Shown piece by piece: positions 2,347 to 40,967 of a DNA stretch of 44,499 bases. The notes below the pieces were generated by a model. The model made no database searches. It was not told the DNA's origin and worked only from the letters and a program-made list of their open reading frames with translations. Location: the NCBI GenBank assembly GCA_033442325.1, contig JAWQFM010000022.1, positions 542,791-587,289 on the forward strand, given 5' to 3'. The translations under genes were made by a program, and so were the position numbers. Origin of the DNA: Salpingoeca rosetta (lineage: Eukaryota; Protista; Choanoflagellata). Position 1 is the stretch's first letter; the number at the start of each line of letters is the position of its first letter.

Positions 2347-3516
2347 CGTGTGTTTGTGTGTCTGTGCGTGTGCGCGCGTGAAGTTTGTTCTTGTTGTGCC
2401 TTCACGCTCGCTCTTGTGCACGAGATTTGCAGCTTAAACAAGTGCATGTTTGGCGAATCTCACATGGCAGTGCACGTACGCCACATCCACCACCGCCACT
2501 GCCATCATGGCATGATGTGCTCAGATGAGGCCGTATCCTGTGTTCTCCTGGTGCTCAAGCACAAACCATTCTGACATCGTCCTCCCCACTTACAAGATGA
2601 CAACTGCCACCATCTTTGGAAAGAACATGGAACAGGTTCGCACGTGTACGATTTGAGGGGTGTGGTGGGTGTGTTGGGTATGATATGTGCGTGTGTGGTG
2701 TGTGTATGTGTTTGCTTTGGGTATCCACGTGTAAGTGAGCTGTTACAAGCATTGGGTTCTTGACATCGTTATTAGTCTTGCTTTGACGTGTGCGTGTGTG
2801 TGTGTGCGTGTGCGCTCTCACACACTCTCTCTCTATCTCTCTGCCTCTGTGTGTGTATGCGTGTATGTGCGTATCAGATTCAAGTGGTGGATGGCAAGGC
2901 GGGCAAGTTCGCTGATTGGCAATCAAAGCGCGGCGTTGCTTTCTTCCGTGGCCGCCCTTCCAACCAGGCCCGTGTGGACGCAATGCTCATGAGCAAAGAG
3001 CGGCCCGATCTCGTTGACGCGCGCATCACCAAGAACCAGTTCAACTACTTTCCAAACGAGGAGGTGTGTGTGTGTGTGTGTGTGCGCGTGCGTGTGTGTG
3101 TGTGTGTGTGCGTGTGTGTGTGTGTGCGCGCGCGCGTGCGCGCGGTGATGGTGGTGGACAGTTGAGGTGGTTGCTTTGTTTCGTTGTCCCGCCGGTGGCA
3201 TGTCTACGCATTGTGCGTGTGTGTGTGTGTGTGTGTGTACGACATGTTCAAGTCAGTGATGCTCACAACCATGTGTTTCGCGTCTGTTCTGCTGTGTCTT
3301 TGAGCGGCGATGGCAGGCGAGGCGTGAGCACCGGGCGTTTGAGGCGAAATACGGCAAGAAGGCTGAATTGCAGCCCATAGACACCTTCTTTCGCAACAAG
3401 TACTTGCTGAACATTGACGGCACTGTCGCTGCTTATCGCCTGGCCACCACCCTCGCTGGCACCAGCACGCTCTTCAAGCAGGTATGTGCTGTGCTGCGAC
3501 TACGCTACGTGTGCAT

Positions 3517-3562
<46 letters not shown>

Positions 3563-4413
3563 CTCATCTCATCCGGCATGGTCACACATACGCACACACA
3601 CACACACACTGGCGCACTGCAGGAATCTGACTATTATGAGCATTTTTACAATGCACTTGAGCCGTGGGTGCACTATGTGCCTGTTGAGAGAAACCTCTCT
3701 GATCTGTTCGACCGCGTCGAATACGCCCAGCAGCACGATGACGAGGTGCACAGGGACACACGAGACTGTGCTGACTCACACACACACACACACACATACA
3801 CACACATACACGCACACACACACACACACACATACACGCACATCACATCACATGGACTGTGTCACCCCCCTCCACTTGCAAACACCATCCGGTTTTCAAC
3901 GCTGCGCGTGTTTCCCCTGGGCCTGACTGTTTCTTGGCGCCAGATGCAAGCCATTGCGCGGGCAGGCCGCGAGTTCACGCGCAAGCACCTCCGCATGCCC
4001 GACATCTACTGCTACCACCTCCGCGCCCTCCGCAAATACAGCCGCTTGCTCACTTTCACGCCCCAGGTGATGAGTGCACGCGCGTACATGCGTGCGTGCG
4101 TGTGTGTATGTGTGTGTGTGCGTGTGTGTGTGTGTGTGCGCGCGCTTTGTGTGTTGTCCAAGTCCACTTGCGTGCGCTCTGTGCTCACAATACATTGTCG
4201 TTTTGCGATTACCCAGGTGCCGCCTGGCATGGAGGAAATTGTTTCCGACAAAGCGAGGAAGCAATGTCCATGCCCAACATTTCCGGGAAAGCCGCGATGG
4301 TGGTGCGTGAACCCCTCACCTTGGCATGCTTAGCTTCATGTTGTCTGTGTCTGTAGATGTGACAGATATTGCCTGTCTCCTCGTCTTCAGCCTTTGCCAA
4401 GGAACACCGCCTT

Positions 4414-5756: not shown

Positions 5757-5984
5757 ATGAGAAGGGCTCAACCCACCAACACAGCGGCAGCGACGCTGAT
5801 GTTGTCGTTGCTCACGTTCATTGCAATGTTCTCGACCACTTCCTGCGCCACGCCAGCCACGACGTACCGTGTTGGCTGCACAGTGACTCCCATCAACCCA
5901 TGTGCGTGCGTGCGTGCGTGTGTGTGTGTGTGTGTGTGTACGTGTGTGTGTGTACGTGTGTGTGTGTGTGTGCGTGTGTGTGTA

Positions 5985-6067
<83 letters not shown>

Positions 6068-6813
6068 AATGGAATTGGTCACCCCTCAAATACCGAAGCT
6101 AATCATTCTGTTTTGACCCTCCTACTTCAATGGTTGCCACTACCTTCCTGTTCATAGGGCTGTGCAATGCCTTGGAGGACATCTTTGAGCGGTACGCACC
6201 ATGGGACGTCACGTTCCAGTACATGACGGAAGTGGACATCCTCGACAATGCCGCCAGCCTGGACTTTGCCCTTGTCGACCCAAAGACCGTCTCCTGCCTT
6301 GACGTGGAGCACGCTGTTGCTCCGTTGGCCACCCTGGGTCTTCCAAACATCTTCGGTACGTACGTCACAAGGCGTGTGTTTTGTGTGTGTGTGTGTTGTG
6401 TGTGTGTGTGTGTTCTTTGTGTGTGTGTGTGTGTATGTGCATGTGTTCTTTGTGTATTTGTGTGTGTGTGTGTGCTGTGCATGCATGTGCTTCGCCCAGC
6501 GAGCCTACCGCTACAACATGTGCCTTGCTTCCTCGTCCCACCATGTTCGCCAACCATTATTGACTCGCTTGGTCGTTTTCACAATGTTGTGCACGCAGTG
6601 GAGACGCGCAAGGACCACAACGACTACCTGTACCAGACTGGTGGCGTCATCTTTGCGCTGGCCAGCTCCGAGCTGAGGGTGCTCACAGATGTGAAGGACA
6701 AGATTGTCGCTGCCACCACGACCACGGACTTTGCAAGCACACTGGCCCCTTTTGCAGAGTACAAAACCGAGACGGGCAACGAGCTTGTCATGGACGCAGC
6801 AATGGTACGATTG

Positions 6814-6846
<33 letters not shown>

Positions 6847-6929
6847 TGTGAGTGAGTGGGTGTGCGTCTGCGTCGATGTGTGCGTGTGTGTGTGTATGTG
6901 CGTGTGTCTGCGTGTTTGTGTCTGCGTTG

Positions 6930-6963
<34 letters not shown>

Positions 6964-7830
6964 TGAACAAGGTGTGGTTGTACATTGTGGTCAAGCATAT
7001 CATCACTTCTTGCACCATCCCTTGCGTCACCCAACCTGTCCAAGCAGCTGGGTGTCCACACACACATATGCTCACACACATATATGCTCACGCACACATT
7101 GCATTGTGTGTGCGGCCTTTTCACAGGTGCAGTATCTGGGGTCGCCACAGCGCGTGCTTGAAGCGGTGCTTGCTGGTGTTGCACACGTGGGCATGGTGCA
7201 GACGGGGTTCCTTGAGCGTGCAGTGGCACGTGGGGACCTGGCTTGGGCGCAAGTCAGTGTGCTGTCACAGAACCTCGTGGTTGAGGATGACCTTCGCTTC
7301 CCGTATGTCAGCTCAACGCTCGTGTATCCAGACTGGTCACTGATCGCCTTTGACTCTGCAGATGCTGATGTAAGGGCACATGCATTTGCCGTGCGTGTGT
7401 GTGCATGTGTGTGTGTGTGCATATGTGGGTGCTTGAACTTGCGCTTGTACTTGTACTTGTACTTGCGGGTGCTTGTACTTGTACTTGTGTGTGTGTGCAT
7501 TTGTGTTGTTGTGCCCAAAGTCACGTGCAATCCAGCTTCGCAGCACCACGGACATCGTTAATTCGCCAATGCCTCAGCCCAATCAATCACACACCGTGTA
7601 CACATATCGATATACTCACGTGTAACCATGTCCTTTCAACATCCTGCACCCTCATTCACTAGGACCGAGAAACCATGATGAACTTTGTGTTTAGCACCAA
7701 CACCACACTGGACATCCACTTCACCACATCCCGCAGCTACGCCACCGTGGGCGACATCTTGGTGCGTACATTCGGTCGTGGTTGTGCACACACGCGCGCA
7801 CACAGCACGCTTGTATGCACAAACACACAC

Positions 7831-7910
<80 letters not shown>

Positions 7911-10900
7911 GCGCATGAATGTAACATGTTGCGCGCCTGTCGAGCAGCACACCCAATGCGTTGCTGCTGTTGACAAGCCTTCACCTCATCGCTGTGCCCC
8001 TTTTTGTGCCGTTCACGCACACACGCGCACGCACACTCACACTCACTCTGCCTCTCTCTCTCTCTCTCTGTACCTGTTTGCGTCTCTCCTTGTCTTTGCT
8101 TTGTTTACCAACTGTAGGAAACATACGGGGTGATTGTGCGCGACCTTGATCAGCCGCTGCTGGCACAGTGCCCACGATCGGCATCCCACTTTGTACACCA
8201 TGGTGACAGCACGGTTTCCGCAACTCCTGATCACGTTCGCCTCAGTGTTAACCGCACAGGCCTCACGGACGAGGAGATAGAGAAACAGCTTGAAACGATT
8301 ATCAACTGCCCATCTGACACCTATCCATTACATTACCTCATTATCTTCGAGCTGTGCGATGGAATGGACTGCCCCGAGCATTCCCTATGCATCTGTCGTC
8401 CCTGTCAACACGCAACACCAGTTCAAGTACGAGCGTTTGCACAAGTGCTATGCGTGTTCTCATGCATGTTGGTGTATTTGGCCATGAGCGTACAAGACGT
8501 GTCTACAATTGAAAAGCAAGGTATCCATCAAGCGTTTTCGATGACTAACATGAAACTCCCTGTATCCTCACTGCCACCACCACGACTACCGCCATCGTCA
8601 TGATAATCAGATCCACCACACAGAGGAGTTCTTCACGCAGCACACGCTGGAGACGAACCACGCGCTCCTGGCCGACATTCTCGGTGTCTCATGTGGGCGT
8701 ATGCGCACTTGCAGCCAGGACCAGCAACCAAACACACAGTACTTTCTGGTTGAAGATCACCTCTACGACGTGCGCGATAACCAGGATACGGTGTTCTTTC
8801 ACGTGAACGTCAAGTCCTTGGAAGGTGACGGCTTTTCGTTTTCCACAGAAGGGGTGCCTGTGCCTGGCCACCCGTACCTTGCCACCGTCAACATTTCTGG
8901 CCTCCACTTTGGAACGCTCACAGTTGAGGTGCGCACACATTTCGTTTGAGAATCGTGCGTGTTTGTTTTTGTGTGTGTGTGTGTGTGCGTGTGTGTGTAT
9001 GTGTGTGTATGTGTGTGTGTGTGTGTGCGTGCGTGCATGTGTGTGTGTGTGCGTGTGCGTGCGTGTGCGTGCGTGCGTGTGTGTGTGTGTGAGGGTATGC
9101 TCTTGTGTGCCGCTGTGAGAACCATAACGTTTCTCTTGTTTGTGACACTGGCTCATGCAATGCACATGCCGCTGCTCTCTCCCACACCCTCCCTCACCCC
9201 CCATACACACATATCAGGTGTTTCTCGCAGACCGCCTGACATCTGAGGAGGAGTGGGAGCCGATTACCGCCAGCCCCTTCCTTGTGGATGTGCTGCCACG
9301 TGACTGTCCCAAAGGCGAGGTCCCAACCCAAGACAATATGTGCGTGTGTCCTGCCGGCGCACTTCGCATTGGTGGCAAGTGCATGGACCCAGCAGAGTCG
9401 ACACCTCTCTTCGTCGCACTGACGGTGTTCGTCATCGGTGTTATCGGGTACATCGTGTTTATCGTTATGCGCAAGCGTGCGGATGCGCTGTGGCAGATCG
9501 ACAGCGAGGACATTGTTGTGAGCGATCCTCCAGAGGTGCTGGGGATGGGCGCATTTGGTGTAGTGATCAAGGGGGAGCTGAACGGCACCGGCATCGCCAT
9601 CAAGCGTGTCATGCCCAAACCACCGTCTCGATCAAAGGCGGACAAGGCGACAACATCCCAGACACGTTCCACCAAAAGCTCTCCGCGGAGCGTTTCAAGA
9701 GCTGGCGATCGCTTTATGCTGAGCACAACCAATTTCGAACAGCGGGCCGCCAGTCGTGGTGACACTCTCGTGAGCGCCATGAGCACGCACAACAGCACCA
9801 TGAACACGGCTACCAAGAGCAAACGTGGACGATCCCTGCAGGCAGCGAGGTAACTCCGAGTGGACACATGTTCCTGTTATTTCATGAAGACGCGTCCCTT
9901 GATCTCGCACACGCACACACTCTCACCCCTAGCAAACGCACGGATCACGACACCAACGTAACAGGGCCGAGTTCCTTGCGGAAATGAGGCTGTTATCGCG
10001 CCTGCGCCATCCGTGCGTCGCCACCATGCTCGGTGCAACTCTGACGAAGTCAGGCGAAGTGCTCCTCGTCATGGAGTACCTCGAGCACGGGTAGGTGTCT
10101 GCGTGTACATAAATATACATAGATGTGTGTGCGTGTGTGTGTGTGTGTGTCGCATGCTGCTTGAGAATGCGTGCAAGCAACCTGGCAGAGCCCTTCTCAT
10201 CGCTCACAAAACGCTGTCACCATCTGTAACTGCTCAAACGCTGCACAATACAACAACAGTTCGCTGTACGACTTTTTGCGCAACGACAAGCTGCCGACGC
10301 CAGACATGTTCCTGCTGCCCATTGTCAAGGACATTGTGTCTGGCATGCGCTACATCCACAACCTCAAGCCGCCGGTTGTGCACGGCGACCTGAAGGCAAA
10401 GAACGTGCTTGTGGATGGCAACTTCAAGGCCAAGATTGCCGACTTTGGGCTCTCACAGAAGCGTCGCTTTGGCTGTGGCACACCATACTGGATGGCGCCA
10501 GGTGTGTGTGTGTGTGTGTGTGGTGTATGCGTGTGTGCATATGTGCATGTACATGCGTGTTTGCACGTGTGTGTGTATGTGTGTGTGTGTGTGTGTGTGT
10601 GTTGCACAGCTGCGTCCTTTCCCCTACCTCAACACATACATAACCTTCCAACCACTGCCACTCACAATCACTGCCACTCACAACCACCACCACCACAACC
10701 ACCCATTGCCACCAATCATTCAAATCATGCAGAGGTGCTGCGCGGAGGAGAGGTGACGCGGGAGGCGGACGTGTACAGCTTCGCCATCACCGTGTACGAG
10801 ATCTACAGCCGACAGGACCCGTTCCCAGAGGAGAACGTGGCGGAGGTGCTGCAGCAGATTGCCGCACGCCAGGTGCCGGCAAAGCGACCCGACATCCCAG

Positions 10901-12327
10901 ACTCGTGCCCCGTCATGCTGGCTGAGCTTGCGCGGCGGTGCTGGTCCGAGGAGCCCAAGTTCCGGCCAACGTTCGACCAGGTGGACGCGCAGCTGGGCGA
11001 GCTCAACATCAGCAAGGTGGGCGCAAGCCTCATCCAGCAGAAGCAGGACGCGCTGAAGAAGGCCACGGTGCTCAACGACGTGTTCCCGCCACACATTGCC
11101 AAGATGCTGGAGGAGGGCAAGAAGGTGCACCCGGAGCACAAGGACGACGTGACCATCTTCTTCTCCGACATTGTGGGCTTCACCAACATCAGCGCGCAGC
11201 TGACGCCGGCGGCGGTGTCGGACATGCTGGACCGACTGTACTCTGCCTTTGACGAGCTGACGGAGAAGCACGGCGTGTTCAAGGTGGAGACCATTGGCGA
11301 CGCGTACATGGCGGCAACAAACCTTGTTGAGCCGCAGCACGACCACGCGCTCCGCATTGCGCAGTTTGCGGAGGACGCCATCAAGGCGGCGCAGTCGACG
11401 TTCATTGACATGGAGCGGCCGGAGCTCGGGTGCGTGAACATCCGCGTTGGGTTCCACTGCGGCCCTGTTGTGGCCAACGTTGTTGGGCGGCGCAACCCGC
11501 GGTACTGCCTGTTTGGGGACACGGTGAACACGGCGTCGCGCATGGAGAGCTCGAGCGAGCGCAACAAGATCCACGTGTCGACGTCTGCGGGGGACCGCGT
11601 GCGGAGCCAGGCGCCATGGGTGAAGCTTGAGTCGCGCGGGGTGCAGAACATCAAGGGCAAGGGCGAGATGCTGACATACTGGCTGGTGAGCACGAAGCGG
11701 GAGAAGAAGAAGGAGGGCGGGCAGCGGGTGATGATTGCCTCCGAAGAGGCAGAGGTCATCGAGATGCCGAACGAGGACACCAGCGACAACGAGAACGGTG
11801 GCGCCGAGGATGAGGGTGATGCAAGCTCGAAAGCGAGTGAGACTTTGCACAACAGCACGGCGGACCATGCTGCTGACACCACCTCCAATGTAGTCAGTGC
11901 TAGCCAAGGTGCTTCTGTCGTGCCTGCGCGTGTGTCGGCGTCGGCCCAGCACCGCTCAATACGCTTGAGTGACTCAGGCTTGCCGCCTTCCCACCGTGAG
12001 TCCTCAGACAAAGGTTCTTCCTCCTCTTTCGATGGTGACAGTGTTCGTCTGTACGACGCTCACGCTCGCGACAGCATCTCCGTCATGCATGGTGACGTCA
12101 GCGGACCTGGGGTGTCCTCGGATGCGAAGCACGCGCGGATTTCTCATGTCTCGTTGAGTGAGTGTACATGGCTTCATGCAGACCCAGCAGACAAGTCTGC
12201 GCCACAGGCCCACAACCGACCATCTTCACCTCGTTGTCTTGAGTCCAAGCAAGCCGTTTCACAACAAGAAGACGGCCGTGCGCCTTCCACTGTGTTGCGT
12301 GACAATGGCCCAGAAAGCGTTGTTTGA
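5757..12327 (+). CDS. Receptor kinase-guanylate cyclase, copy 1 (signal peptide, periplasmic-binding-protein-like sensor, Cys-rich/Ig-like stalk, TM, protein kinase, class III guanylate cyclase)
   Basis: Exons 5757-5901, 6158-6355, 6599-6804, 7127-7369, 7663-7761, 8118-8426, 8611-8928, 9218-9849, 9965-10090, 10260-10501, 10733-12327 splice in frame. Kinase motifs: [30 protein letters not shown]. Cyclase motifs: [37 protein letters not shown] (the Glu/Cys pair specifies GTP). TM segment [20 protein letters not shown]. Confidence 0.88.
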
Positions 12328-15252
12328 GTACTGCACTGTAACCATGTGAATCGACTGGCAGCTACGTGTGTGTGTGTGTGTGTGTGTGTGTCCCCTTGCG
12401 CGCTCACCTATGCTTCAACGCCACCTTTCTTTTTCTTTGTTGCTCCTGTTGTTCATGCCATGTTTGCCCGTTTGTCTTACTGTGGAACGTTGTTGTGCTG
12501 TCAGTTTTCATATCGTGCTTCGATCGACTGCACACCCTTGCTCTTTTGTATTCTTCACATGGGATTATATGTGGTTTGTTCCTTGTCGCGCTGTGGTCTT
12601 GCGTCCCAGCATGTCCTTCGGTTGTTCAACACACGATGCTTCAATACATACACCAGCATTGTGCCTTCATTGGACAACAGTGTGTGCATTATTTTGTGTG
12701 TTTCGTTGAGACGTGTGGGTGGAGAGTTGTAGGCAAGACCATCAAGTTCATTCGACTCGAACTTCGCGAAGATACGTTTCTTTGTGTCGAGTTCGGAACC
12801 AGGAAGGATTGCCTGTTCGGAGGAGCATATGCAAACGGAGATCAACCTTCAACAACGCGCTTGAGCGGTTCTGCTTTTCTCTTCGTTGTGTGACTTGACG
12901 TGTGTGACATCAGCCGTAGCTCGACCCTTTATCCTTTACCAACCTGCATTCGCGCGGTCCTCAACGACTGAGGCAAGCCATCGCACTGTAACGAACCTAC
13001 TTACGTGTTCCACTGTCACTTTACAGTCCTCTTTTTCCTCTCTCGGTGACGTCATCGAACCCAAAATCCACCTGCACTGACTGTCACTACGAGCGAAAAA
13101 GAAGCACAAACCTACCAAATTGCGGCTTTGTGTCAAGCAAAACAACGCAGTTGACCTGTGATCGAGGTGTGCGTTGCGGTAGAAGCGGCAGGAGATAGAC
13201 GAGAACCTCAGCTCACACGTCATTTCATCAGAGTCCAAAGCGGTTTCACGCACGCGAGCCGTACCACATCAGGCCATGATCTTGTTGGGAGTGTTGCTGC
13301 TTGCGGTGACACCCACGGTGAATGCTTACCGCATTGGGTGTGCAGCGACCCCTGTTCAACCGCGTAAGTTCTTGTTTTCTGCAACCTTCTTGCCTTGAAG
13401 CGTTCCTGCGCGTATTGGCATAGATATTGTGTTCATGTGTGTTTGGCGCCAACTGAACATTTGCAGGCATATGCAATGCCTTGGAGGACATCTTTGAGCG
13501 GTACGCACCATGGGACGTCACGTTCCAGTACATGACGGAAGTGGACATCCTCGACAATGCCGCCAGCCTGGACTTTGCCCTTGTCGACCCAAAGACCGTC
13601 TCCTGCCTTGACGTGGAGCACGCTGTTGCTCCGTTGGCCACCCTGGGTCTTCCAAACATCTTCGGTACGTATATGTCACAAGGCGTGTGTGTATTGTGTG
13701 AGTGTGTGTGTGTGTCTTGTGTGTGTGTGTGTGTTCTTTGTGTGTGTGTGTGTGTGTGTGTATGTGCATGTGTTCTTTGTGTATTTGTGTGTGTGTGTGT
13801 GTGTGCTGTGCATGCATGTGCTTCGCCCAGCGAGCCTACCGCTACAACATGTGCCTTGCTTCCTCGTCCCACCATGTTCGCCAACCATTATTGACTCGCT
13901 TGGTCGTTTTCACAATGTTGTGCACGCAGTGGAGACGCGCAAGGACCACAACGACTACCTGTACCAGACTGGTGGCGTCATCTTTGCGCTGGCCAGCTCC
14001 GAGCTGAGGGTGCTCACAGATGTGAAGGACAAGATTGTCGCTGCCACCACGACCACGGACTTTGCAAGCACACTGGCCCCTTTTGCAGAGTACAAAACCG
14101 AGACGGGCAACGAGCTTGTCATGGACGCAGCAATGGTACGATTGTTGTGTGTGTGTGTGTGTGTGTGTATGTGCGTGTGAGTGAGTGGGTGTGCGTCTGC
14201 GTCGATGTGTGCGTGTGTGTGTGCGTGTGTGTGTGTATGTGCGTGTTTGTGTCTGCGTTGATGTGTGTGTGTGTGTGTGTGTGAGTGTTGATGTGTGTGT
14301 GTGTGTGTGTGTGTGTGTGGTGAACAAGGTGTGGTTGTACATTGTGGTCAAGCATATCATCACTTCTTGCACCATCCCTTGCGTCACCCAACCTGTCCAA
14401 GCAGCTGGGTGTCCACACACACATATGCTCACACACATATATGCTCACGCACACATTGCATTGTGTGTGCGGCCTTTTCACAGGTGCAGTATCTGGGGTC
14501 GCCACAGCGCGTGCTTGAAGCGGTGCTTGCTGGTGTTGCACACGTGGGCATGGTGCAGACGGGGTTCCTTGAGCGTGCAGTGGCACGTGGGGACCTGGCT
14601 TGGGCGCAAGTCAGTGTGCTGTCACAGAACCTCGTGGTTGAGGATGACCTTCGCTTCCCGTATGTCAGCTCAACGCTCGTGTATCCAGACTGGTCACTGA
14701 TCGCCTTTGACTCTGCAGATGCTGATGTAAGGGCACATGCANNNNNNNNNNNNNNNNNNNNNNNNNNNNNNNNNNNNNNNNNNNNNNNNNNNNNNNNNNN
14801 NNNNNNNNNNNNNNNNNNNNNNNNNNNNNNNNNNNNNNNNNCATATGTGGGTGCTTGAACTTGCGCTTGTACTTGTACTTGTACTTGCGGGTGCTTGTAC
14901 TTGTACTTGTGTGTGTGTGCATTTGTGTTGTTGTGCCCAAAGTCACGTGCAATCCAGCTTCGCAGCACCACGGACATCGTTAATTCGCCAATGCCTCAGC
15001 CCAATCAATCACACACCGTGTACACATATCGATATACTCACGTGTAACCATGTCCTTTCAACATCCTGCACCCTCATTCACTAGGACCGAGAAACCATGA
15101 TGAACTTTGTGTTTAGCACCAACACCACACTGGACATCCACTTCACCACATCCCGCAGCTACGCCACCGTGGGCGACATCTTGGTGCGTACATTCGGTCG
15201 TGGTTGTGCACACACGCGCGCACACAGCACGCTTGTATGCACAAACACACAC

Positions 15253-15324
<72 letters not shown>

Positions 15325-18300
15325 GCGCATGAATGTAACATGTTGCGCGCCTGTCGAGCAGCACACCCAATGCGTTGCTGCTGTTGACAAGCCTTCACCT
15401 CATCGCTGTGCCCCTTTTTGTGCCGTTCACGCACACACGCGCACGCACACTCACACTCACTCTGCCTCTCTCTCTCTCTCTGTACCTGTTTGCGTCTCTC
15501 CTTGTCTTTGCTTTGTTTACCAACTGTAGGAAACATACGGGGTGATTGTGCGCGACCTTGATCAGCCGCTGCTGGCACAGTGCCCACGATCGGCATCCCA
15601 CTTTGGGATCATGAATGAAGCAACTCAAGAGTGGACCACCGAACTCTCTATCGATGTGGGAAGCCTTACTCATGACGAAGCTGAGCTGCTGCTGTCAGAC
15701 CTCGTGATTTGCCCGGCGAACACATATGCGCTTCACTATCTCATCATCTTCGAACTATGTGACGAGTTTCATTGCCCTGAGGAAGCATTCTGCACTTGCA
15801 GTCCTTGCAAGCGTGCGAACCCAGTGCAGGTCGGTAAGCTATGTCATGTTCACGCCTTGCACGTGATAGACTTTGATGTTGTGTTTGAACTGGTGCCCAC
15901 TCCCTGTGTTTGTCGCCGTTCACATGATGTACTTTTCCCCTGCCAACACCGCCACCACTAGATCCACCACACAGAGGAGTTCTTCACGCAGCACACGCTG
16001 GAGACGAACCACGCGCTCCTGGCCGACATTCTCGGTGTCTCATGTGGGCGTATGCGCACTTGCAGCCAGGACCAGCAACCAAACACACAGTTCCTGCTGA
16101 TCGAGGACAAGGTGTTTGATGAACGGCACAACCAGGATACGGTGTTCTTTCACGTGAACGTCAAGTCCTTGGAAGGTGACGGCTTTTCGTTTTCCACAGA
16201 AGGGGTGCCTGTGCCTGGCCACCCGTACCTTGCCACCGTCAACATTTCTGGCCTCCACTTTGGAACGCTCACAGTTGAGGTGCGCACACATTTCGTTTGA
16301 GAATCGTGCGTGTTTGTTTTTGTGTGTGTGTGTGTGCGTGTGTGTGTGTATGTGTGTGTATGTGTGTGTGTGTGTGTGCGTGCGTGCATGTGTGTGTGTG
16401 TGTGTGCGTGTGCGTGCGTGTGCGTGCGTGCGTGTGTGTGTGTGTGAGGGTATGCTCTTGTGTGCCGCTGTGAGAACCATAACGTTTCTCTTGTTTGTGA
16501 CACTGGCTCATGCAATGCACATGCCGCTGCTCTCTCCCACACCCTCCCTCACCCCCCATACACACATATCAGGTGTTTCTCGCAGACCGCCTGACATCTG
16601 AGGAGGAGTGGGAGCCGATTACCGCCAGCCCCTTCCTTGTGGATGTGCTGCCACGTGACTGTCCCAAAGGCGAGGTCCCAACCCAAGACAATATGTGCGT
16701 GTGTCCTGCCGGCGCACTTCGCATTGGTGGCAAGTGCATGGATCCAGCAGAGTCGACACCTCTCTTTGTCTGCATCTCGCTGGTTGTGATAGGACTGGCA
16801 ATGTACGGCGTGGTCGCTGTCATGCGCAAGCGTGCGGATGCGCTGTGGCATATTGACAGCGAGGACATTGTTGTGAGCGACCCGCCCGACATGCTTGGCC
16901 GAGGAGCGTTTGGAGTTGTGATCAAGGGGGAGCTGAACGGCACCGGCATCGCCATCAAGCGGGCAATGCCAAGGCCATCCTCCGATGCGTTGGCGTCCAG
17001 CTCGAAGAACCAGAAGTCAGGCACTTCGGTGGCTTCGTTTGAAGTCAAAGGCAATTCCTCACAGGCTGGTGTTGCCACCACCGTCTTCAACCTGGGCTAC
17101 CACGCAAACGGCGGAGACTTGATTGAAAAGGCGTTGAAGCAAGATCACTCATCGTTGTTCGGATCCACACAGCGCGGGCGAACCACGAAGGACTACTCTG
17201 TGGCCAAGTACGTTGCACTTCACGTTTAAGCGGCCTGTATGTCCAAGATACACTTCATTCATGTCACCACCGCTCACGGCATATGCTTGTAATGGCCTTG
17301 TTGACACTGACGTACAGGGCCGAGTTCATGGCCGAGATTCGCCTGCTGTCGCGCCTGCGCCATCCGTGCGTCGCCACCATGCTTGGTGCCATCGTCACGA
17401 GATCCAAGGAGGTGCTTCTTGTCATGGAATACCTCGAGCACGGGTTAGCACGCGAGGTGTGGGTGGGTGGATGAGCAGATGGATCGGTGAACTTGGATCG
17501 CGCAAGTCTTCATTTGCGCCTGCGGTCGGACACCGCTGTCTCCTTTCACTCACATCCAACACATGCGCGCGCACATATTTATCCGCACACACACATACAC
17601 ACACCGCTCATAATTGCACGTACGTTCGAAGGTCACTGTATGACTTCCTGCGCAACGACAAGCTGCCGACGCCAGACATGTTCCTGCTGCCCATTGTCAA
17701 GGACATTGTGTCTGGCATGCGCTACATCCACAATCTCAAGCCACCGGTTGTGCACGGCGACCTGAAGGCAAAGAACGTGCTTGTGGACGGTAACTTCAAG
17801 GCCAAGATTGCTGATTTCGGGCTCTCGCAGAAGCGTCGCTTTGGCTGCGGCACACCATACTGGATGGCGCCAGGTGTGTGTGTGTGTGTGTGTGCATGTG
17901 CACACATGCGTGTTTGCACGTGTGTGTGTATGTGTGTGTATGTGTGTGTGTATGTGTGTGTGTTGCACAGCTGCGTCCTTTCCCCTACCTCAACACATAC
18001 ATAACCTTCCAACCACTGCCACTCACAATCACTGCCACTCACAACCACCACCACCACAACCACCCATTGCCACCAATCATTCAAATCATGCAGAGGTGCT
18101 GCGCGGAGGAGAGGTGACGCGGGAGGCGGACGTGTACAGCTTCGCCATCACCGTGTACGAGATCTACAGCCGACAGGACCCGTTCCCAGAGGAGAACGTG
18201 GCGGAGGTGCTGCAGCAGATTGCCGCACGCCAGGTGCCGGCAAAGCGACCCGACATCCCAGACTCGTGCCCCGTCATGCTGGCTGAGCTTGCGCGGCGGT

Positions 18301-19133
18301 GCTGGTCCGAGGAGCCCAAGTTCCGGCCAACGTTCGACCAGGTGGACGCGCAGCTGGGCGAGCTCAACATCAGCAAGGTGGGCGCAAGCCTCATCCAGCA
18401 GAAGCAGGACGCGCTGAAGAAGGCCACGGTGCTCAACGACGTGTTCCCGCCACACATTGCCAAGATGCTGGAGGAGGGCAAGAAGGTGCACCCGGAGCAC
18501 AAGGACGACGTGACCATCTTCTTCTCCGACATTGTGGGCTTCACCAACATCAGCGCGCAGCTGACGCCGGCGGCGGTGTCGGACATGCTGGACCGACTGT
18601 ACTCTGCCTTTGACGAGCTGACGGAGAAGCACGGCGTGTTCAAGGTGGAGACCATTGGCGACGCGTACATGGCGGCAACAAACCTTGTTGAGCCGCAGCA
18701 CGACCACGCGCTCCGCATTGCGCAGTTTGCGGAGGACGCCATCAAGGCGGCGCAGTCGACGTTCATTGACATGGAGCGGCCGGAGCTCGGGTGCGTGAAC
18801 ATCCGCGTTGGGTTCCACTGCGGCCCTGTTGTGGCCAACGTTGTTGGGCGGCGCAACCCGCGGTACTGCCTGTTTGGGGACACGGTGAACACGGCGTCGC
18901 GCATGGAGAGCTCGAGCGAGCGCAACAAGATCCACGTGTCGACGTCTGCGGGGGACCGCGTGCGGAGCCAGGCGCCATGGGTGAAGCTTGAGTCGCGCGG
19001 GGTGCAGAACATCAAGGGCAAGGGCGAGATGCTGACATACTGGCTGGTGAGCACGAAGCGGGAGAAGAAGAAGGAGGGCGGGCAGCGGGTGATGATTGCC
19101 TCCGAAGAGGCAGAGGTCATCGAGATGCCGAAT
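6163..19133 (+). repeat. Direct segmental duplication, period about 7.3 kb (6163-11772 vs 13472-19133), with a mosaic of near-identical and divergent blocks
   Basis: Direct comparison shows near-identical blocks: 6163-8193 with 13472-15605, 8779-9410 with 16130-16765, and 10733-11772 with 18094-19133. Differences are mainly in microsatellite length. Confidence 0.95.
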
Positions 19134-19562
19134 GAGAGCAAACATCGCGGTGATGGTGACAAGCGCTCAGCTGCCTCTGCTGACAAGCCCACCCTCCCGA
19201 GACCCCCGAGCCAGAGCAGCTCGCTGCGAATTGCCTCGCTGGTTTCCTCGAGAGTGTCGCCAACGGGCTCTGATAAGCCATCTCCGAGTCGCGGAAGCAG
19301 CCTCAAATCCATGTCACGCAAACTCCCGTCGTCTGGTCCCTCACAGTTGTCACTGAAGGACTCTCCATGGCTTGCAAACCCCGATTCGAGTGAGGCCAAC
19401 GTCCGACGTCCTCGACGCAACCGAAGTTCCAGCCCACCGTCCCCATCCTTCCAGCGCATGGACCGCCGGGCCACTGCTACTACTGTTCATGTTGAAGACG
19501 ATGGCCATCATCCCCAGGCAACGTCCTTCCAAGCCTGGGCAGACTCCTCTGTGGACATTTGA
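13276..19562 (+). CDS. Receptor kinase-guanylate cyclase, copy 2 (tandem paralogue; one intron contains an assembly gap)
   Basis: Exons approximately 13276-13363, 13467-13664, 13930-14135, 14484-14726, 15085-15183, 15530-15829, 15962-16279, 16573-17207, 17318-17443, 17632-17873, 18094-19562. Intron positions and motifs match copy 1. Signal peptide [17 protein letters not shown]; [22 protein letters not shown]. Confidence 0.85.
14742..14841. other. Assembly gap (100 N)
   Basis: Run of exactly 100 N inside an intron of receptor copy 2. Confidence 0.99.
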
Positions 19563-19992: not shown

Positions 19993-21322
19993 TTACGCAT
20001 CCACATCCTGCATAGTATCTGAGTCGCTGAGTTTCACCTGTCTGCTCCGCGTGCTGGACGCGCTCCTATCAAAGATGGCGCCCGGTGGCGAGCCGAGTAG
20101 TTCCTCATCCACATCGTGGTGGTGTGCTGCTGGTGGTGGTGGTGAAGTGATGTAGGTGACTGGTGTGTTCAACACGGTCGTGTGTTGTTGCTGGAACCCG
20201 TCACCACCGTGGTCATGAAAAGTGGGGTAGGCGCTGCTAGAGCGATCGCTTGTATTGCTTCGTCTGCTGCCGTTTCGACTCTTCACAAATACGAGGGAGC
20301 CTTCTGGTTGTGTAAACACCGTATCTGCGCGGTTTCTGGTGTCGTCAAACTGAAACACCTCGTGTGCTGCATCGTCGATAGCATCATTCTCATCTGTGCA
20401 CGTGCTGTCGTTGTGAGGGAAACCATCCGCATCGTCCTGCAACACCAGCACGGCCGAGGTGTTGCCGTCAATTGACAAATACTCCCCCTTGCGTCTGATT
20501 TCGGTGTGCGTGCGACCGCGACTGTCGTCGAGGTTCAATTCCCCAGCAGTTACAACGCTCACTTGCGCCTTTTCATGGGCGTGCTGTGTAGAGTGCTGCT
20601 CGCTTGCTTCATTCATATCGTCCTCATCATCACTGCTGTGGCTGCTGCTGTCGTCATTGTCGCTCTCGGCACTAAAGTTTGCCTCCTCTTGGCGATGACC
20701 ATCAGCGCTGGCATCACGCATATCGCCTCCTTCTTCAGGAAGCGCATATGCACCTGCAGCGGCAATCTTCCCCGACGTCTGTCTGGTGAACGTGGTTGTT
20801 GCGATCCCAACGTCGTCATCAATGACACCACTGCTGTGACCGTGGAGGTTTGCGGCATGTGGTAGTGGCGCAGTTACGTCCAGCATCTCAACATCACCGT
20901 CTTCTTGGCTCGTCTGGTCGATGCTGACGCTGCTGTGTTTGCCCACGTGCCCACCCCTGGTGCCCCATGCCTGCATGCGTTGTGGCTCATCCACATTGGT
21001 CTCCGCGACGATTCGCATGAGAGGGACAGGAAGACACGAACGCGGTGTCTCGTAGTGGTGGATGAGTTGCGCCAGATTCTGTACCGAGCAAATGGTAAAT
21101 GTGAGCAGCAGCGTTTGGCGTGTGTTGAGGTGTGAAGATGACGGATGTGTGTGTTGAAGGGAGAGTGAGTGAGTGAGTGTGTATGTATGTGTGTGAGTGT
21201 GTGTGTGTGTGTTGAAGGACATGCAATTGGTGTTACAATGTCAGCAACAGGTACCCAAGGTGAAAGTTGCAGACCACATTGCAGATCTCCAACACAACGC
21301 ACACTCGCGCACGCACACGCAT

Positions 21323-21384
<62 letters not shown>

Positions 21385-21928
21385 CACCTTACTTGGAAGA
21401 GGGGCTGCGTGGTGTTGTCATCTGTTTGGAGTTGGAACTTTCCCTTCCGCCCGCGAAGAATATCGTACTGCCTGCATTCCGTCTGCGTCGCCTTGAGAAA
21501 GAGGCGGTGCTGCTGGCCGTCGTCATGCACGATAAACGAGCCAACGGCCTGCCCAAACAACTCCGCGTACACAGACCCGGTCGTGACTGCGCTGTTGCGC
21601 ATGTTCAGAAGCGGCAACTCTGGTGCGCTGCTCACATGTGCTGTCGCTGCTTTGAATCCACTTGAGTTTGCTGTGTGGAACGTGGCGCTTGCAAAGTCGG
21701 AACTGGTCTGTCTCCGTCGTAGACACATGTACCACACTGCCAGCACGGCGATGAGCAGAAGAATAGTGGCAAAGCCAGCAGCTGCAAGGATGAACCCAAG
21801 CCGCGAAAGCCCAAGTTTGCTGCGGATGCTCGTGTCTCGGGTGGGCGTGACACCATCTGCAGTTGCTGTTGTTGCTGTTGCTGCTGTCGTCGTCGTCGTC
21901 GTCGTTGTTGTTGTTGTCGTTGTTGTCG

Positions 21929-22022
<94 letters not shown>

Positions 22023-23441
22023 CGTGAGATGTGATGTGGAAGACGAGGTCGGTTGCGGTGTGACAGACTCGGCATCCCGTGGGGAAAAAGTGATGGTGAG
22101 AGGTGTAATACTTGTCAGCCCACCGCCGTCAACAGCAACCACCGTGAACGAGACAAACGCTTGCACGTCAAGCAGTGACGATGCGTTGAAACTGAGAACA
22201 CGGCCACCGTCACCATCACCACCACCACCATCACCACCACCATCACTTGTGACATTGTCGTGCGTGATGACAGCATCGACGGCGTGGAGCGAGGTGCACT
22301 GGAAGACGTCACCAGGGTGGGTCCCATTACCGCCGGTGCTGCTGTCAGCACTCGTTGCCGGAGCACTGCTGCCATCAACGCTCTGATCAGCAGCGTTGGT
22401 GCTTGCATTGCTGCAATGGAGGACTGAGAGCAACACCACAGACACGTCCTTCCACGGACTGCACATGTCTGCATCCGTCACTGCTGGCAGCGATACTGTG
22501 ACAGCAGCAGCGGATGCATTGGCTGGGACTGCGGCCACGATGTGTGCCGTGTTGAATGCGGGCGCCTCATTGACATCAAGCACATGCACAACGTGCGAGA
22601 ACGACACGTTGGATGGAAAGCCATCGTGAATCATGGCATTGTCGCTGTCGCCGCCGACTGCACTACCACCACCACCATCATCATCATCGCCACCACCACC
22701 ACCTCTGCCATCACCAGCAACGACGCTCATATTTGAGTTTGTGGTGCCAGGGCTGCCTCGCCAGTCAACAGCGATGGTCACGGGTAATGCTGGTGATGCT
22801 TCAAAATCAAGCGGGTGGCGTGCCATGAGCGTGTTGTTGCTGTCGATTGCAAACTGTCCAGCTGCTGCTGCTGTTGCCGATGTTGTTGTCACGCGTGCGG
22901 TGTTGTCTCTGAATGGTGCGTGGAGATCCTCATCCAGCAGCAGCACGTGAGCAACCGGGGTCGGGTCGGTGTGAGTGGATAGTGTGTGCTCTGCAACAAA
23001 AGCACGGCTGAGGACGGTCGCGTATGGTGGCTCGTTGACATCGCGCACGCGCACCGTGTGCGGAATGATGTAGGAAGCACCCCTGGCAGACACGTTGGCG
23101 TAAAGCGAGAAGCGCCCATGTGGCAGCATCTCATAGTCAACGCCACTGCACACCACGTCCACCTCGCAAGTGTGCTCCTTGAGCAAGTGTGGATCATAGT
23201 AGTTGCTGGTGGCTGTCGTGCTGGTTGGCGTGACGGCTGTCACCTGTGCTATGCTTGTGGATGTTGTGAATGGCATACTCGTGGTGCTCGTGACAAACTC
23301 GCCCGAACCACTGCCCTGTGCATCCCCGTTGTCTGCACTCGATTCACTGCCTTGCATCTGCTCACATCGAATTGTTAGAGCAGTGCACGTGGGACCTCCA
23401 GGCGTTTCGGGGAACACGCCCACCTGCACATGCGCGGGCGA

Positions 23442-23517
<76 letters not shown>

Positions 23518-24499
23518 CGTGTCGTGTGTGAAGCAGCAGTGGCGTCAGGCAAGCGTACTGTGACTGCCAGGCTGAGCACATGCTGCACCGTTTCTGCTGT
23601 TGTGTTAACGCTGCCGCTGCCGCTGCTGCTGGTTGTGGTGGTGTTTCGCTGGTGAAAGCGAGAGGTGGTCTCCGTGATGTTGTGCACGCGATCTCGAATC
23701 GACACCACCAGGGGCACCTCCGTGCTGACCACCTGCATCTCCAGTGTTTGTCGTGCGCACGTGTGCACGTGTTGTGCAGCTGTTGAGAACGGAAACGACG
23801 TTGCCGTGGTTGTTGTCGTGGTGGTGGCAGTGGTGGCGGCGGTGGTGGGTGTCGATGCCGTTGTTGCTGTTGCTGTCGCGGGAGTGGCTGACGTTGCCGG
23901 GGTGTGAGTGTGAGATGCTGTGCTGTTCCATGTCGGAGGTGTCGACAGAGGTGTGGATGCAGGTAGCGTGGTGAAAGGTGGGGATGATAACGGCGATGGT
24001 GCCGTGCTGCCAGAAGAGGCGGAGCAGCACCGAAAGGTGAGGGCAACAAACGGGTACAAGGCTGCTTTGAGGGTTGTGTTTGAGTTGACAACAAGGACGT
24101 TGCCTTCCAGCCGAAAAGGGCTCACGTGCTGCACAAATGGAAAGACACCACCACCGCTGCCGCTGCCACTGCCACTGCCACTGCCACTGCCGCTGCTGTC
24201 GCTGTCGTCGACGCTTTCACTGTCACTGCTAAGCATTGTTGGCACTGTGTCCACGTACTGGCCGTCTGTGTCAATCAACTGTGTGCGTGTGAGGGTGCAC
24301 TGATGGTGTGCGCCTGCCCTGGAGCTTGTCGTGACATCATCAGCAGTGCGGGTGAACGCTGGCAGCAACGCTGCGACGACTGTACCGGGTTCTGCGTGAG
24401 CATCGGAGATGGTGTTGGGTACAATGGCCACTTGTGGCGCCGGAATAGGCTCCCACTCCACGATAACGCGCACATGGCAGAAAGCAGCCAGCCTCTGTG

Positions 24500-24532
<33 letters not shown>

Positions 24533-25722
24533 CGCTGCTACTACAAGTAGTGCTGCTGGTGGTGGTGGTGTTGGAATCACTAACAGTGCTGAGGTCGATG
24601 GTGTGTGGTTCTGAGGAGAGCCGCACAACAAGGTCGTGGGTGGACAGGTGTGGCGGTGACTCGAGTGATTGCAGCAGCACGATGTTGCCGTGTTCATCGA
24701 CATCAAACACAGGCGGTGTGCTGGTGCTGTTGCTGCTGTCGCCGGTGCTGGCGGGCATAAGGTGGTTGTCCGGTATGATGGAGAGGAGGCTGCGCTGGCC
24801 GAGTGAGCCGCCCATAATCTCCACCGCAGCCACCATAGACCCGATTGGGGCTGCCGAGCTAACATACACGGTGCTTGGCAGGGTGCATGTGGGCGCAGCT
24901 GCGGACTGCGACACGATCGTGATGGGAAGTAGTGTTGTTGCAGCGTGTGCAAACGGGTCGTCGCGATAGCGATGGTGTGCTGTGACGGTCACGTTGAGCA
25001 GCGTTCCGACCGGCAAGAACAGCGGCGCCCGCGCTAAGATGACTTCGCCCTCGCTCTGGTCGATGTGAAATAGGGGTTCAACCAGCGCCCCTTGATGCAT
25101 GAACGTGGCAGGAGGGTGCGCTGCAACTGTTACGTTGACTGCATACGTCATGTTGGCGCTGATCCCTGTCGTGCGATGCACAGCGGCCACGCGGAACATG
25201 TGCGTGTTGGCGGCCGCTGTCTGGGCCAGCCGTAGCGGCGCCGTGACATTTGGGGTTGGGGCCACGAAGACGGGGACATGTGAATCTTCGACAGCAGACA
25301 CCAACAGCGCTGGTCTGGCCTGCAACAGGCGTTGGAAGGGGGGGGCAGGGATTGTTAAGTGCATGCACGCAGCCAAGGCAAGTGAGACACCGGGAAGGAC
25401 AGGTACACGACGGTTGTTTGACGAAGAAGGCTGAAGCAAGACAGAAGGCCCCGTTGCATGTGTGTGTGTAGTACGTCGGCTGACGGTTGGATTGATTCTA
25501 CATCGTGTTGTTCCATCGCTGCGAGCAACAAGCCAAAGCACATGCAGGACTCACCTCGAACCACGACGATTGGACTGTGAGCACTAGCAGAAGCCCCAGT
25601 GTGTACTGCCACAGCAGTTGTTTCTGCCTTGATGAGCGTGGCGCAGCCCGCACCCGATTTGACAAGCCCATGGAGCGATGTGACCTTGTTGGTTGTGCGT
25701 GATGACTTTGTGTGCGAGCCAT
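19993..25722 (-). CDS. Cadherin-like single-pass receptor with poly-Thr mucin-like stretches and a cytoplasmic SH2-like domain
   Basis: Three phase-0 exons: 25722-25555, 25319-21393, 21078-19993. Hydrophobic leader LLWQYTLGLLLVLTV. Cadherin motifs VDYE..VRVRDVNEPP and LDFE..VLDVNEAPAF. TM LGFILAAAGFATILLLIAVLAVWYMCL followed by RRR. SH2-like GSFIVH...LFLK...QPLFQ|NLAQLIHHY...LPVPL. Alternative ATG at 25671. Confidence 0.75.
21886..22023 (-). repeat. Coding (ACA/ACG)n trinucleotide repeat giving a poly-Thr stalk next to the TM
   Basis: (GTT)n/(GTC)n on the + strand, in frame within the cadherin-like exon. Confidence 0.9.
23443..23517 (-). repeat. Coding (ACA)n repeat giving poly-Thr in the ectodomain
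   Basis: (GTT)n on the + strand, in frame within the cadherin-like exon. Confidence 0.9.
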
Positions 25723-29107: not shown

Positions 29108-30301
29108 CTATGCCGGGTCCAAGAACTGCACAACGCGTGTGGGAAAGAGGCGGATCAGGCGCGTGCGCACAGCGAGTGCCAGCGGCAGTGATGATGCAAC
29201 TGCGAGACCCGTCTTCTGCTCTCCATTGCACAGGCTTGGGTCGGCGCCAGCGGACACGAGCAGCTCCGTCGCCCGCCAATCCCCCTTGCGCAGCGCGTGA
29301 TGCAGTGGGGTGTCCCCATGCCGGTCCGCCTGGTTGACGCGACAGCCCTCTGTTGACAGAAGCGTGCGCATGGCGTCGTGGTAGCCGAGACGGCTGGCGA
29401 TGGCCAGCGCGGTCTCCAGCTTGGAGCCGGCCTCATATGACGGTGGCGCGGTGCTCTCTGCTGTGGGCTGGTTCACGTCTGCACCGGCATCCAGCAGCTG
29501 CTGCAACACGTTGGCGTTGCCGTAGCCAGCGGCCTTGTGAAGCGGGTACAGGCCAAACATGTCGCAGGACTGGTCTGGGTGCATCTTCACGTCGTGCAGC
29601 AGGTACTGCACCACAAACACCTGGTCCTTCCAGCTGGCGTGCTCCAGAAGCGTCAGCCCGTGCTGGTCGACAGCGCGCGCGTCTGCGCCCTCGCGGAGCA
29701 GAAATTTGAGCGCCTGCAGCTTGCCCAATCCCGCAGCGAGCATGGATAGGGACCGGCCAATGGAGTCGCGCAGCTCCACATCACCGCCCGACAGATGCTT
29801 GGCCTCCCTCACCAGCTCCTTGAAGTCCTGCAGCCGGTTGCCGCGCAGAGCAGCCGTTGCGGCGACTCGGATGCGCTCCAGGTCCTCGGCCGTGGACAAT
29901 GCGGGCGCACGTGTGCCATCACGGCTGAGGTCCTCGCTGGTGCCACACGCATCCTCTTCTTCTTTTGTCGTTGTCGAACCGAACATGAGCCCCGTCCAGA
30001 GGCCCAGCATCATCAGGCTTGTTGTGGCTGTGTTTGAGGTCTTGTTGCGCCCAGCGGCGTTGTGAGTCCAACTCCAGCCACCGCTGCGCGTGGTCTGTGC
30101 AGGCAGCAGTGCCTGCTGCCCTCTGGTGCGTTCTTGACCACCACGGCTGCTCAGCCACACATAACTACTGCTTGCCGACACGGCAGTGGCCACTGCTCGT
30201 CTCCTCGCCGCGGCTGCCACCACCCCGCGCCCAACACCAACAGCAGCAGCGGCACCAACAGCAGCAGAACGACCAACAAGCGTCATCATCAACGTCGGCA
30301 T
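29108..30301 (-). CDS. Ankyrin-repeat protein, single exon, with a possible mitochondrial presequence
   Basis: Ankyrin motifs GLYPLHKAAGYGNANVLQQLLDAGADVNQ and GDTPLHHALRKGDWRATELLVSAGADPSLCN. The ORF-track extension upstream of 30301 is microsatellite, so the start is inferred. Confidence 0.8.
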   Translation of the reverse strand: MPTLMMTLVGRSAAVGAAAAVGVGRGVVAAAARRRAVATAVSASSSYVWLSSRGGQERTRGQQALLPAQTTRSGGWSWTHNAAGRNKTSNTATTSLMMLGLWTGLMFGSTTTKEEEDACGTSEDLSRDGTRAPALSTAEDLERIRVAATAALRGNRLQDFKELVREAKHLSGGDVELRDSIGRSLSMLAAGLGKLQALKFLLREGADARAVDQHGLTLLEHASWKDQVFVVQYLLHDVKMHPDQSCDMFGLYPLHKAAGYGNANVLQQLLDAGADVNQPTAESTAPPSYEAGSKLETALAIASRLGYHDAMRTLLSTEGCRVNQADRHGDTPLHHALRKGDWRATELLVSAGADPSLCNGEQKTGLAVASSLPLALAVRTRLIRLFPTRVVQFLDPA

Positions 30302-30537
30302 CGTTGGTAATTGTCGAATTTTATGGATGCTATGACGAAAATTCAAGGAAGGACTCAACATTGCAGCCCAGCATGCAAAACAAGATCGAGAGAAGCAAGC
30401 GCGGATAGGCATACACACACACACACACAGACACACAGACACACACAGACAGACACACACACACACACACAGACACACACACACACACACAGACACAGAC
30501 ACAGACACACACACAAGCTAACGGGTAGGTGTCTCGA

Positions 30538-40905: not shown

Positions 40906-40967
<62 letters not shown>

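Follow-up and report, generated by a model that had tools for sequence, protein, structure and literature searches.

How can two neighbouring genes be identical over kilobases, introns included, and between those blocks carry sequence that hardly aligns? The question is raised by a pair of complete receptor guanylate cyclase genes, A and B, that lie head to tail on the + strand of contig C22 in the 55.4-Mb genome of the choanoflagellate Salpingoeca rosetta. We analysed a stretch of 44,499 nucleotides (nt), positions 542,791–587,289 of C22, that holds both genes (the window, about 55% GC; coordinates are window positions unless a contig is named, and the prefix A or B marks the gene). We conclude that A and B are probably old tandem duplicates that have been patched repeatedly by interlocus gene conversion with several partners. 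The two genes are placed as follows:

5757–12327, + strand: gene A, receptor guanylate cyclase (ATG 5757, stop codon 12325–12327), delimited by open frames and splice junctions
13276–19562, + strand: gene B, tandem paralogue of A with the same exon plan (ATG 13276, stop codon 19560–19562)

A and B share one domain order: a signal peptide, a PhnD-like binding domain, cysteine-rich ectodomain exons, a single hydrophobic transmembrane (TM) helix (about A9420–9490), a protein kinase interrupted by a serine-rich, low-complexity insert, and a cyclase, followed by a C-terminal tail distinct in each gene. Their GT-AG introns are rich in (GT)n/(CA)n microsatellites. Protein searches, run per exon or on uninterrupted open frames, matched the kinase to PF07714 and PF00069 and the cyclase to the class III family PF00211 (E 6e-56). 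The closest relative of solved structure is atrial natriuretic peptide (ANP) receptor 1, or GC-A (E 2.9e-58, PDB), and the alignment to it conserves the Glu in ...ETIGD... and the Cys in ...YCLFGD..., the residue pair that sets the GTP specificity of class III guanylate cyclases. The kinase, which as read from sequence retains its Gly-loop, Lys, catalytic Asp and DFG motif, may be active. No match to the ANF-receptor ectodomain PF01094 was found in A or B; the sensor is instead PhnD-like (PF12974), with a weak match on single exons of A (24.3 bits, against a curated cut-off of 27) and matches above the cut-off in P0031, a paralogue, and in two homologues, P0010 and P0007.

Self-BLAST reduces the similarity of A and B to one repeat pair of 5.6 kb, A6163–11775 and B13472–19136, with a period of about 7.3–7.4 kb. 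A global alignment scored in 50-column windows then divides this pair into identical blocks and diverged islands:

6163–8205 (B13472 to about 15617), + strand: identical block 1, comprising binding-domain exons 2–5 with four introns, plus 88 nt at the start of the exon that follows
8206–8584 (B about 15618–15935), + strand: island 1, the Cys-rich second part of exon 8118–8426 and most of intron 8427–8610
8585–9409 (B about 15936–16764), + strand: identical block 2, comprising exon 8611–8928, intron 8929–9217 and the start of exon 9218–9849
8741–8778 (B16092–16129), + strand: mini-island of 38 nt inside block 2, with no third-copy donor
9410–9465 (B16765–16820), + strand: TM-helix island, where A, B and U, a third family member described below, all differ
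9607–9974 (B16962–17327), + strand: island 2, the Ser-rich kinase insert and intron 9850–9964, unalignable among A, B and U
10578–11775 (B17939–19136), + strand: identical block 3, comprising the end of an intron and the last exon with kinase C-lobe, cyclase and 75 nt of tail

The two methods thus bear out an earlier note on this DNA, which had described kilobase-long, near-identical blocks, introns included, alternating with diverged stretches. All four blocks it listed recur, with the last beginning near 10592 rather than at 10502, and 10502–10591 is microsatellite-rich intron of 52–92% identity. Mismatch-free runs extend over A6163–6362, 6396–6895, 6909–8205, 8585–8740, 8779–8985, 8989–9387 and 10592–11771, and the longest clean runs measure 1240 nt (within 6909–8205), 1180 nt (10592–11771), 498 nt and 399 nt. 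With 570 mismatches in 5464 ungapped columns, site permutation (n=2000), a test that leaves exon/intron rate differences out of account, yielded a longest clean run of 63 nt on average and 146 nt at most, against the 1240 nt observed. In the first 2 kb of the tract, the only breaks are differences in GT/CA microsatellite length. Nearly all introns of A and B hold a (GT)n or (CA)n microsatellite, with sites at 5900–6070, 6360–6420, 6810–6960, 7385–7460, 7820–7910, 8950–9110 and 10502–10600 and at the equivalent positions in B; as the sole changes within otherwise identical blocks, microsatellite lengths could serve as a clock for tract age.

Between the blocks, divergence is deep and uneven. 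Identity is 24–68% per window in island 1 and 32–48%, the random level, in island 2; it is about 80% over A9975–10090 (exon 9965–10090), 30–48% per window in intron A10091–10259 and 52–98% over A10260–10591, where exon 10260–10501 reaches 90–98%. Introns 8427–8610, 9850–9964 and 10091–10259, singled out in the earlier note, are indeed diverged (46%, 52% and 48% global identity) with GT/AG junction position and phase kept, as at every splice junction of the pair. Synonymous divergence (dS) per exon along the gene runs from 1.66 in exon 8118–8426 through 0.15, 0.69, 0.87 and 0.28 to 0.004, a series that no single recent duplication can yield, as the earlier note had argued. The ratio of nonsynonymous to synonymous divergence (dN/dS) in the islands is about 0.2–0.4, not above 1. 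In exon 8118–8426, A and B agree in 58% of amino acids (and in all of the first 25 residues), compared with at most 38% to any other paralogue, so that A and B are mutual nearest relatives across it, with saturated synonymous sites and dN/dS of about 0.2. Neutral-site divergence that ranges from a dS of 0.004 to 1.66, with several introns 100% identical, is as expected of interlocus conversion. Switches between identical and diverged sequence fall mid-exon, as the earlier note had it, at about 8205, at 8740/8779, at about 9410 and at 11775; those at 8585 and 10592 lie in introns.

Strong constraint on the encoded protein offers one alternative explanation of the identical blocks, and kinase and cyclase domains do belong to strongly conserved proteins. 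Yet the identity of the blocks extends to six introns or more and to every synonymous site, adjoining exons of the same domains reach a dS of 0.3–0.9, and trees of successive segments conflict; intron identity in itself effectively refutes the idea that purifying selection alone, with no conversion, maintains the blocks. Outside the repeat pair, exon 1 is private to each gene and encodes a different signal peptide; the two first exons are unrelated but for a short motif, Y-R-[VI]-G-C, and no relationship is seen between the first introns or between the tails (beyond A11775 and B19136). That both genes keep their own flanks speaks against a simple crossover and makes conversion the likelier mechanism. 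Unequal crossover is unlikely as the main process, with identity internal and patchy and flanks private, and allelic haplotypes mis-joined in tandem were ruled out on the unrelated 5′ and 3′ flanks, first exons and tails.

A third partner lies on the same scaffold. Paralogue U, at about 480–487 kb of contig C22 and 64 kb upstream of A, shares with B or with A tracts that are 97–100% identical:

16821–16917 (A9466–9562), + strand: B=U tract 1 in the kinase N-lobe, 17/17 informative sites, tree (B,U) 93/91
17328–17648 (A9975–10276), + strand: B=U tract 2, comprising exon 17318–17443, the whole of intron 17444–17631 and the first bases of the next exon
10362–10549, + strand: A=U tract, in kinase exon 10260–10501 and the start of the next intron, with B the odd one out

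Over 144 nt of the kinase N-lobe, B is 99.3% identical to U (at about 484.2 kb), compared with 88% for A, and intron B17444–17631 is 96.7% identical to U over 184 nt. This intron, which the earlier note took as largely unrelated between the copies, and several other diverged patches of B are 97–100% identical to U, and the exchange is not confined to A and B. Informative sites among the three genes change allegiance along the alignment as follows (A coordinates):

9150–9409: A and B agree at 122/123 informative sites
9466–9562: B and U agree at 17/17
9975–10043: B and U agree at 13/14
10048–10067: A and U agree at 8/10
10076–10276, whole intron included: B and U agree at 85/87
10362–10549: A and U agree at 16/19
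10578–11764: A and B agree at 66/67

At least eight switch points fall within about 2.4 kb (A9410–11775) and involve three partners. Maximum-likelihood trees of successive segments return, in order, (A,B) with support 100/99; (B,U) 93/91; (B,U) 100/100 with A among other paralogues; (A,U) 66/90 within (A,B,U) 98/98; and again (A,B) 100/99. Adjacent segments are phylogenetically incongruent with high support, in agreement with the runs of informative sites. Applied to the whole family, Sawyer-type site permutation returned p<0.0005 for numerous pairs; since it disregards rate differences between exons and introns, it is supportive only, and the segment trees are the firmer test. The proposal in the earlier note of an old duplication under gene conversion is therefore supported, and extended by the third partner and the conflicting segment trees.

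Where the islands come from bears on the direction of this history. In a genome-wide search for donors, B15606–15959, B16900–17320, A8194–8608, A9560–9960 and both mini-islands returned their own locus only, the exception being the conserved kinase N-lobe flank within the B16900–17320 and A9560–9960 queries. The idea that every island was imported from a third copy was dropped, as the island queries matched their own loci alone. In a reversed history, one gene of the pair, B or A, would have arisen very recently as a 5.6-kb copy of the other, and the islands would have been imported from paralogues afterwards; at least three of B's diverged patches are common to U, and intron A10091–10259 is 70–100% like the introns of four other paralogues, on C25, C36, C34 and C14. 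We nevertheless consider this order of events improbable. Islands 1 and 2 and the 38-nt mini-island find no donor in the 55-Mb assembly, in the island 1 exon A and B are nearest to each other (58% of amino acids, compared with at most 38%) at saturated dS, and a copy confined to the gene interior would need to have inserted precisely between a homologous yet independent exon 1, with its own signal peptide, and an independent tail. Islands 1 and 2 and the mini-island look like old A/B divergence showing through, rather than imports or fast-evolving cassettes.

A and B belong to a family of ten genes on six scaffolds: A, B and U on C22, three on C21, and one each on C14, C25, C34 and C36. Amino-acid identity over kinase C-lobe and cyclase is at least 88% among the ten, and the next cyclases in the genome reach at most 54%. 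Between A and the other eight paralogues, the proportion of differing synonymous sites (pS) falls steeply along the gene:

Four ectodomain exons (30–57% amino-acid identity): pS 0.52–0.84
Kinase N-lobe exons: pS 0.36–0.54
Next kinase exon: pS 0.13–0.39
Kinase C-lobe: pS 0.06–0.14, with one C21 gene (C21a) an outlier at 0.28
Cyclase domain: pS 0.01–0.06, with the C25 value of 0.36 set aside, an assembly gap cutting that exon

U and seven other paralogues are 90–100% identical to block 3 up to about A11700. The longest exact common stretch is 1180 nt in the tandem pair, 524 nt between A or B and U (64 kb apart), 688–890 nt within the C21 cluster and 102–321 nt between scaffolds; the length of exact shared stretches scales with the proximity of the copies. 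GC content at third codon positions (GC3) is 0.88–0.89 in the homogenised last exon (10735–11700 and 18096–19061), compared with 0.54–0.82 in the other exons; the lowest value, 0.54, belongs to the most diverged exon, 8118–8426, and the introns have a GC content of 0.47–0.54. High GC3 may be a footprint of GC-biased gene conversion.

Several members of the family merit separate description. At C21:503–544 kb, three genes lie together, two in tandem on the + strand and one on the − strand about 15 kb away, and 263–336 consecutive polymorphic sites agree among this trio across the TM, kinase-insert and intron region. Divergence between A and B peaks in just this region, and each subgroup of the family has thus been homogenised in different parts. 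The exons of the C25 locus (601.5–613.7 kb) are 100% identical to the S. rosetta database protein P0031, which assigns the genome to this species and not to human; P0031 is a 1235-amino-acid "TKL/DICTY4 protein kinase" that shows no cyclase Pfam match although the locus encodes a cyclase. A 334-N assembly gap (merged coordinates 10239–10572) cuts the C25 cyclase exon, and the public P0031 gene model is therefore probably wrong at the cyclase. The C36 paralogue (C36:277736–278704) carries one in-frame TGA in the kinase-C/cyclase region, where its identity is just 90%, and is either a decaying copy or the product of a sequencing error.

Identical blocks in a repeated gene invite suspicion of the assembly itself, and copy B does contain a break:

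14742–14841: assembly gap in copy B, 100 N, inside an intron 15 nt past the donor

B14726 is the last exon base ahead of the gap, the donor GT follows at B14727, and both flanks (A7384 = B14741 and A7420 = B14842) are collinear with A and 100% identical to it. Opposite the 100 N, a run that may differ from the true gap in length and that marks a contig break in the repeat copy, A has 35 GT-rich bases (A7385–7419); the coding sequence is untouched. For the published S. rosetta assembly, which may not be the one analysed here, reads of 400–800 nt are reported, with 454 reads of about 400 nt combined with mate-paired Sanger reads (PMC4054682). An assembler could thus in principle have pooled reads of paralogues and placed one consensus twice, or jumped between copies, so that the identical blocks and the B=U patches would be chimeric; the gap lies within B's longest identical block, other family loci (C25, C34 and C36) have gaps too, and the read length of that 454/Sanger assembly falls short of the identical blocks, which reach 1240 nt (PMC4054682). 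Several observations make such an artefact unlikely. Microsatellite lengths differ at several sites within the identical blocks, which indicates that A and B were assembled separately. Switches among unique, A-like and U-like sequence occur every 40–300 nt, inside single 400–800-nt reads, and the B-unique island 2 lies only about 120 nt from the U-type intron. The body of U is without a gap, the flanks of A and B are wholly different, and sequence that is 45% identical cannot be made 100% identical by an assembler.

Gene conversion between old duplicates accordingly remains our preferred account. Non-reciprocal, non-crossover ectopic recombination would repeatedly have copied tracts of about 0.1–2 kb between A and B, shorter tracts would have passed between U, 64–72 kb upstream on the same scaffold, and each of A and B, and rarer exchange would have linked all ten family members on the six scaffolds. 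Tracts copied very recently between A and B would carry no substitutions and differ in microsatellite length only, and islands lacking a recent tract would keep their original divergence (dS of 0.7 to more than 1.6, introns unalignable). Conversion would be strongest where copies lie nearest to each other and in the 3′ module, the most conserved one, and the process is, we infer, ongoing. Persistence of the islands might mainly reflect strong divergence and indels that block heteroduplex formation, a self-reinforcing barrier that we regard as evenly poised between true and false; selection that favours distinct transmembrane or regulatory segments (TM helix, insert or linker) is a lesser candidate, and chance a weaker one again. 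To judge by their coding sequence, A and B, whose PhnD-like domains are identical, should share one ligand and produce cGMP, and functional differences between them would lie in the linker, TM helix, kinase insert and tail.

A number of points weigh against this account. The identical blocks are longer than reads of 400–800 nt (PMC4054682), and the assembly may have smoothed out a small number of real differences; a contig break falls in the longest of these blocks in B. The permutation tests ignore differences in rate between exons and introns, and high GC3 could also be explained by codon selection. The word ongoing draws on zero divergence in a single genome, not on observed events, and islands 1 and 2 could in principle derive from donors that have been lost or were not assembled.

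The earlier note had gone further, proposing that conversion spares the segments that determine specificity and that the locus could be a constant-framework, variable-cassette receptor diversification system. Neither idea is supported by the domain map. The PhnD-like binding fold sits in a 100%-identical block, the PF12974 match of homologue P0010 stops just before the residues aligned to island 1, and the islands comprise a Cys-rich linker behind the domain, TM and juxtamembrane sequence, the kinase insert and introns. At the level of the family, the sensor half is variable (25–57% amino-acid identity) and the output half nearly invariant, and switch points do lie within exons, as a dedicated system directing exchange so as to shuffle specificity segments might show; a pattern of variable sensor and constant output is, however, what ordinary conversion limited to the conserved half is expected to leave. 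Against such a system stand the identical binding domain of A and B, with variation in linker, TM helix, kinase insert and introns; the lack of silent cassettes or extra island copies in the 55-Mb genome, where only the ten complete genes were found; an island dN/dS of 0.2–0.4, with no sign of diversifying selection; and a window in which nothing resembling a recombination signal or dedicated enzyme was seen. We therefore hold a purpose-built cassette system to be very improbable.

Within the window, tblastn with four homologues recovered A and B alone as members of the family. The neighbouring genes, two for glycosyltransferases and one for an ankyrin-repeat protein, are unrelated to the receptors and are listed here with a repeat-rich open frame:

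3368–4333, + strand: GT90 glycosyltransferase fragment
20874–25541, − strand: open frame of 1555 codons, dense in trinucleotide repeats, which read (GTT)n/(GTC)n at 21830–22030 and 23430–23520 of the + strand; sole Pfam match sub-threshold and mucin-like; probably a low-complexity secreted or surface protein
29108–30514, − strand: ankyrin-repeat protein
40294–42900, − strand: GT92 glycosyltransferase

Under the conversion reading, the locus documents active interlocus gene conversion in a choanoflagellate, a member of a group among the closest living relatives of animals, and does so at unusual resolution, with three partners, at least eight switches in about 2.4 kb and a 70-fold gradient of synonymous divergence over ten genes. 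The consequences are practical. Whole-gene trees and orthology calls of these cyclases, annotated as "TKL/DICTY4 kinases", will be wrong, dating of the duplications from the 3′ half will grossly underestimate their age, and a knock-out or guide RNA directed against the kinase or cyclase exons of a single gene will strike several members of the family. Class III cyclases function as dimers. A further suggestion, which we think unlikely, is that the sharp polarity of homogenisation is itself selected, with ten sensors saturated and kinase-C, dimerisation and cyclase regions near identical even at synonymous sites. If so, given that these cyclases act as dimers, a common output module maintained by conversion would let receptors with different sensors heterodimerise freely, and the family would be a combinatorial sensing array in which gene conversion keeps the partners compatible.

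Compared with known systems, the proteins resemble the animal receptor guanylate cyclases ANP receptor 1/GC-A and GC-C in being single-pass, with a class III cyclase preceded by a kinase or kinase-homology domain and a linker helix, and depart from them in an ectodomain with a PhnD-like type II periplasmic-binding fold (PF12974) in place of PF01094. On this domain composition, A and B are predicted to work like an animal receptor guanylate cyclase and to belong to a protist subfamily with binding-protein sensors. Receptors that join binding protein, kinase and cyclase in Seminavis, Thalassiosira, Cylindrotheca and the EukProt/MMETSP transcriptomes have the same architecture at 50–58% kinase-cyclase identity, with PF12974, PF01094 or PF13416 as sensor; beside these diatom and choanoflagellate receptor cyclases, A and B are distinctive in their mosaic and not in their architecture. 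A full-text literature search found no report of gene conversion in S. rosetta or in this receptor family, and nothing on conversion for binding-protein receptor cyclases in choanoflagellates. Programmed cassette systems, among them chicken Ig pseudogene conversion, lamprey VLR assembly, trypanosome VSG and Neisseria pilE/pilS, combine one expressed site with many silent donors, act over somatic or clonal time and target antigen- or ligand-contacting sequence. The pair shares with them the templated copying of short tracts between related sequences and differs in that all copies are complete genes, no silent donors were found and A and B do not differ in their binding domain. Concerted evolution by conversion is textbook knowledge from the primate gamma-globin pair, the red/green opsin genes, MHC/KIR and plant R-gene clusters, and the present case is clean but ordinary and no purpose-built receptor-diversifying device. 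Like known interlocus conversion, it shows a mosaic of identical tracts and old islands, tracts that ignore exon/intron borders, diverged flanks, several partners, more exchange between closer copies and raised GC3 in the converted part; unlike the known cases, it has a choanoflagellate host and an unusually sharp polarity across the family, from a pS of about 0.7 in the sensor to 0.01–0.06 in the cyclase over six scaffolds.

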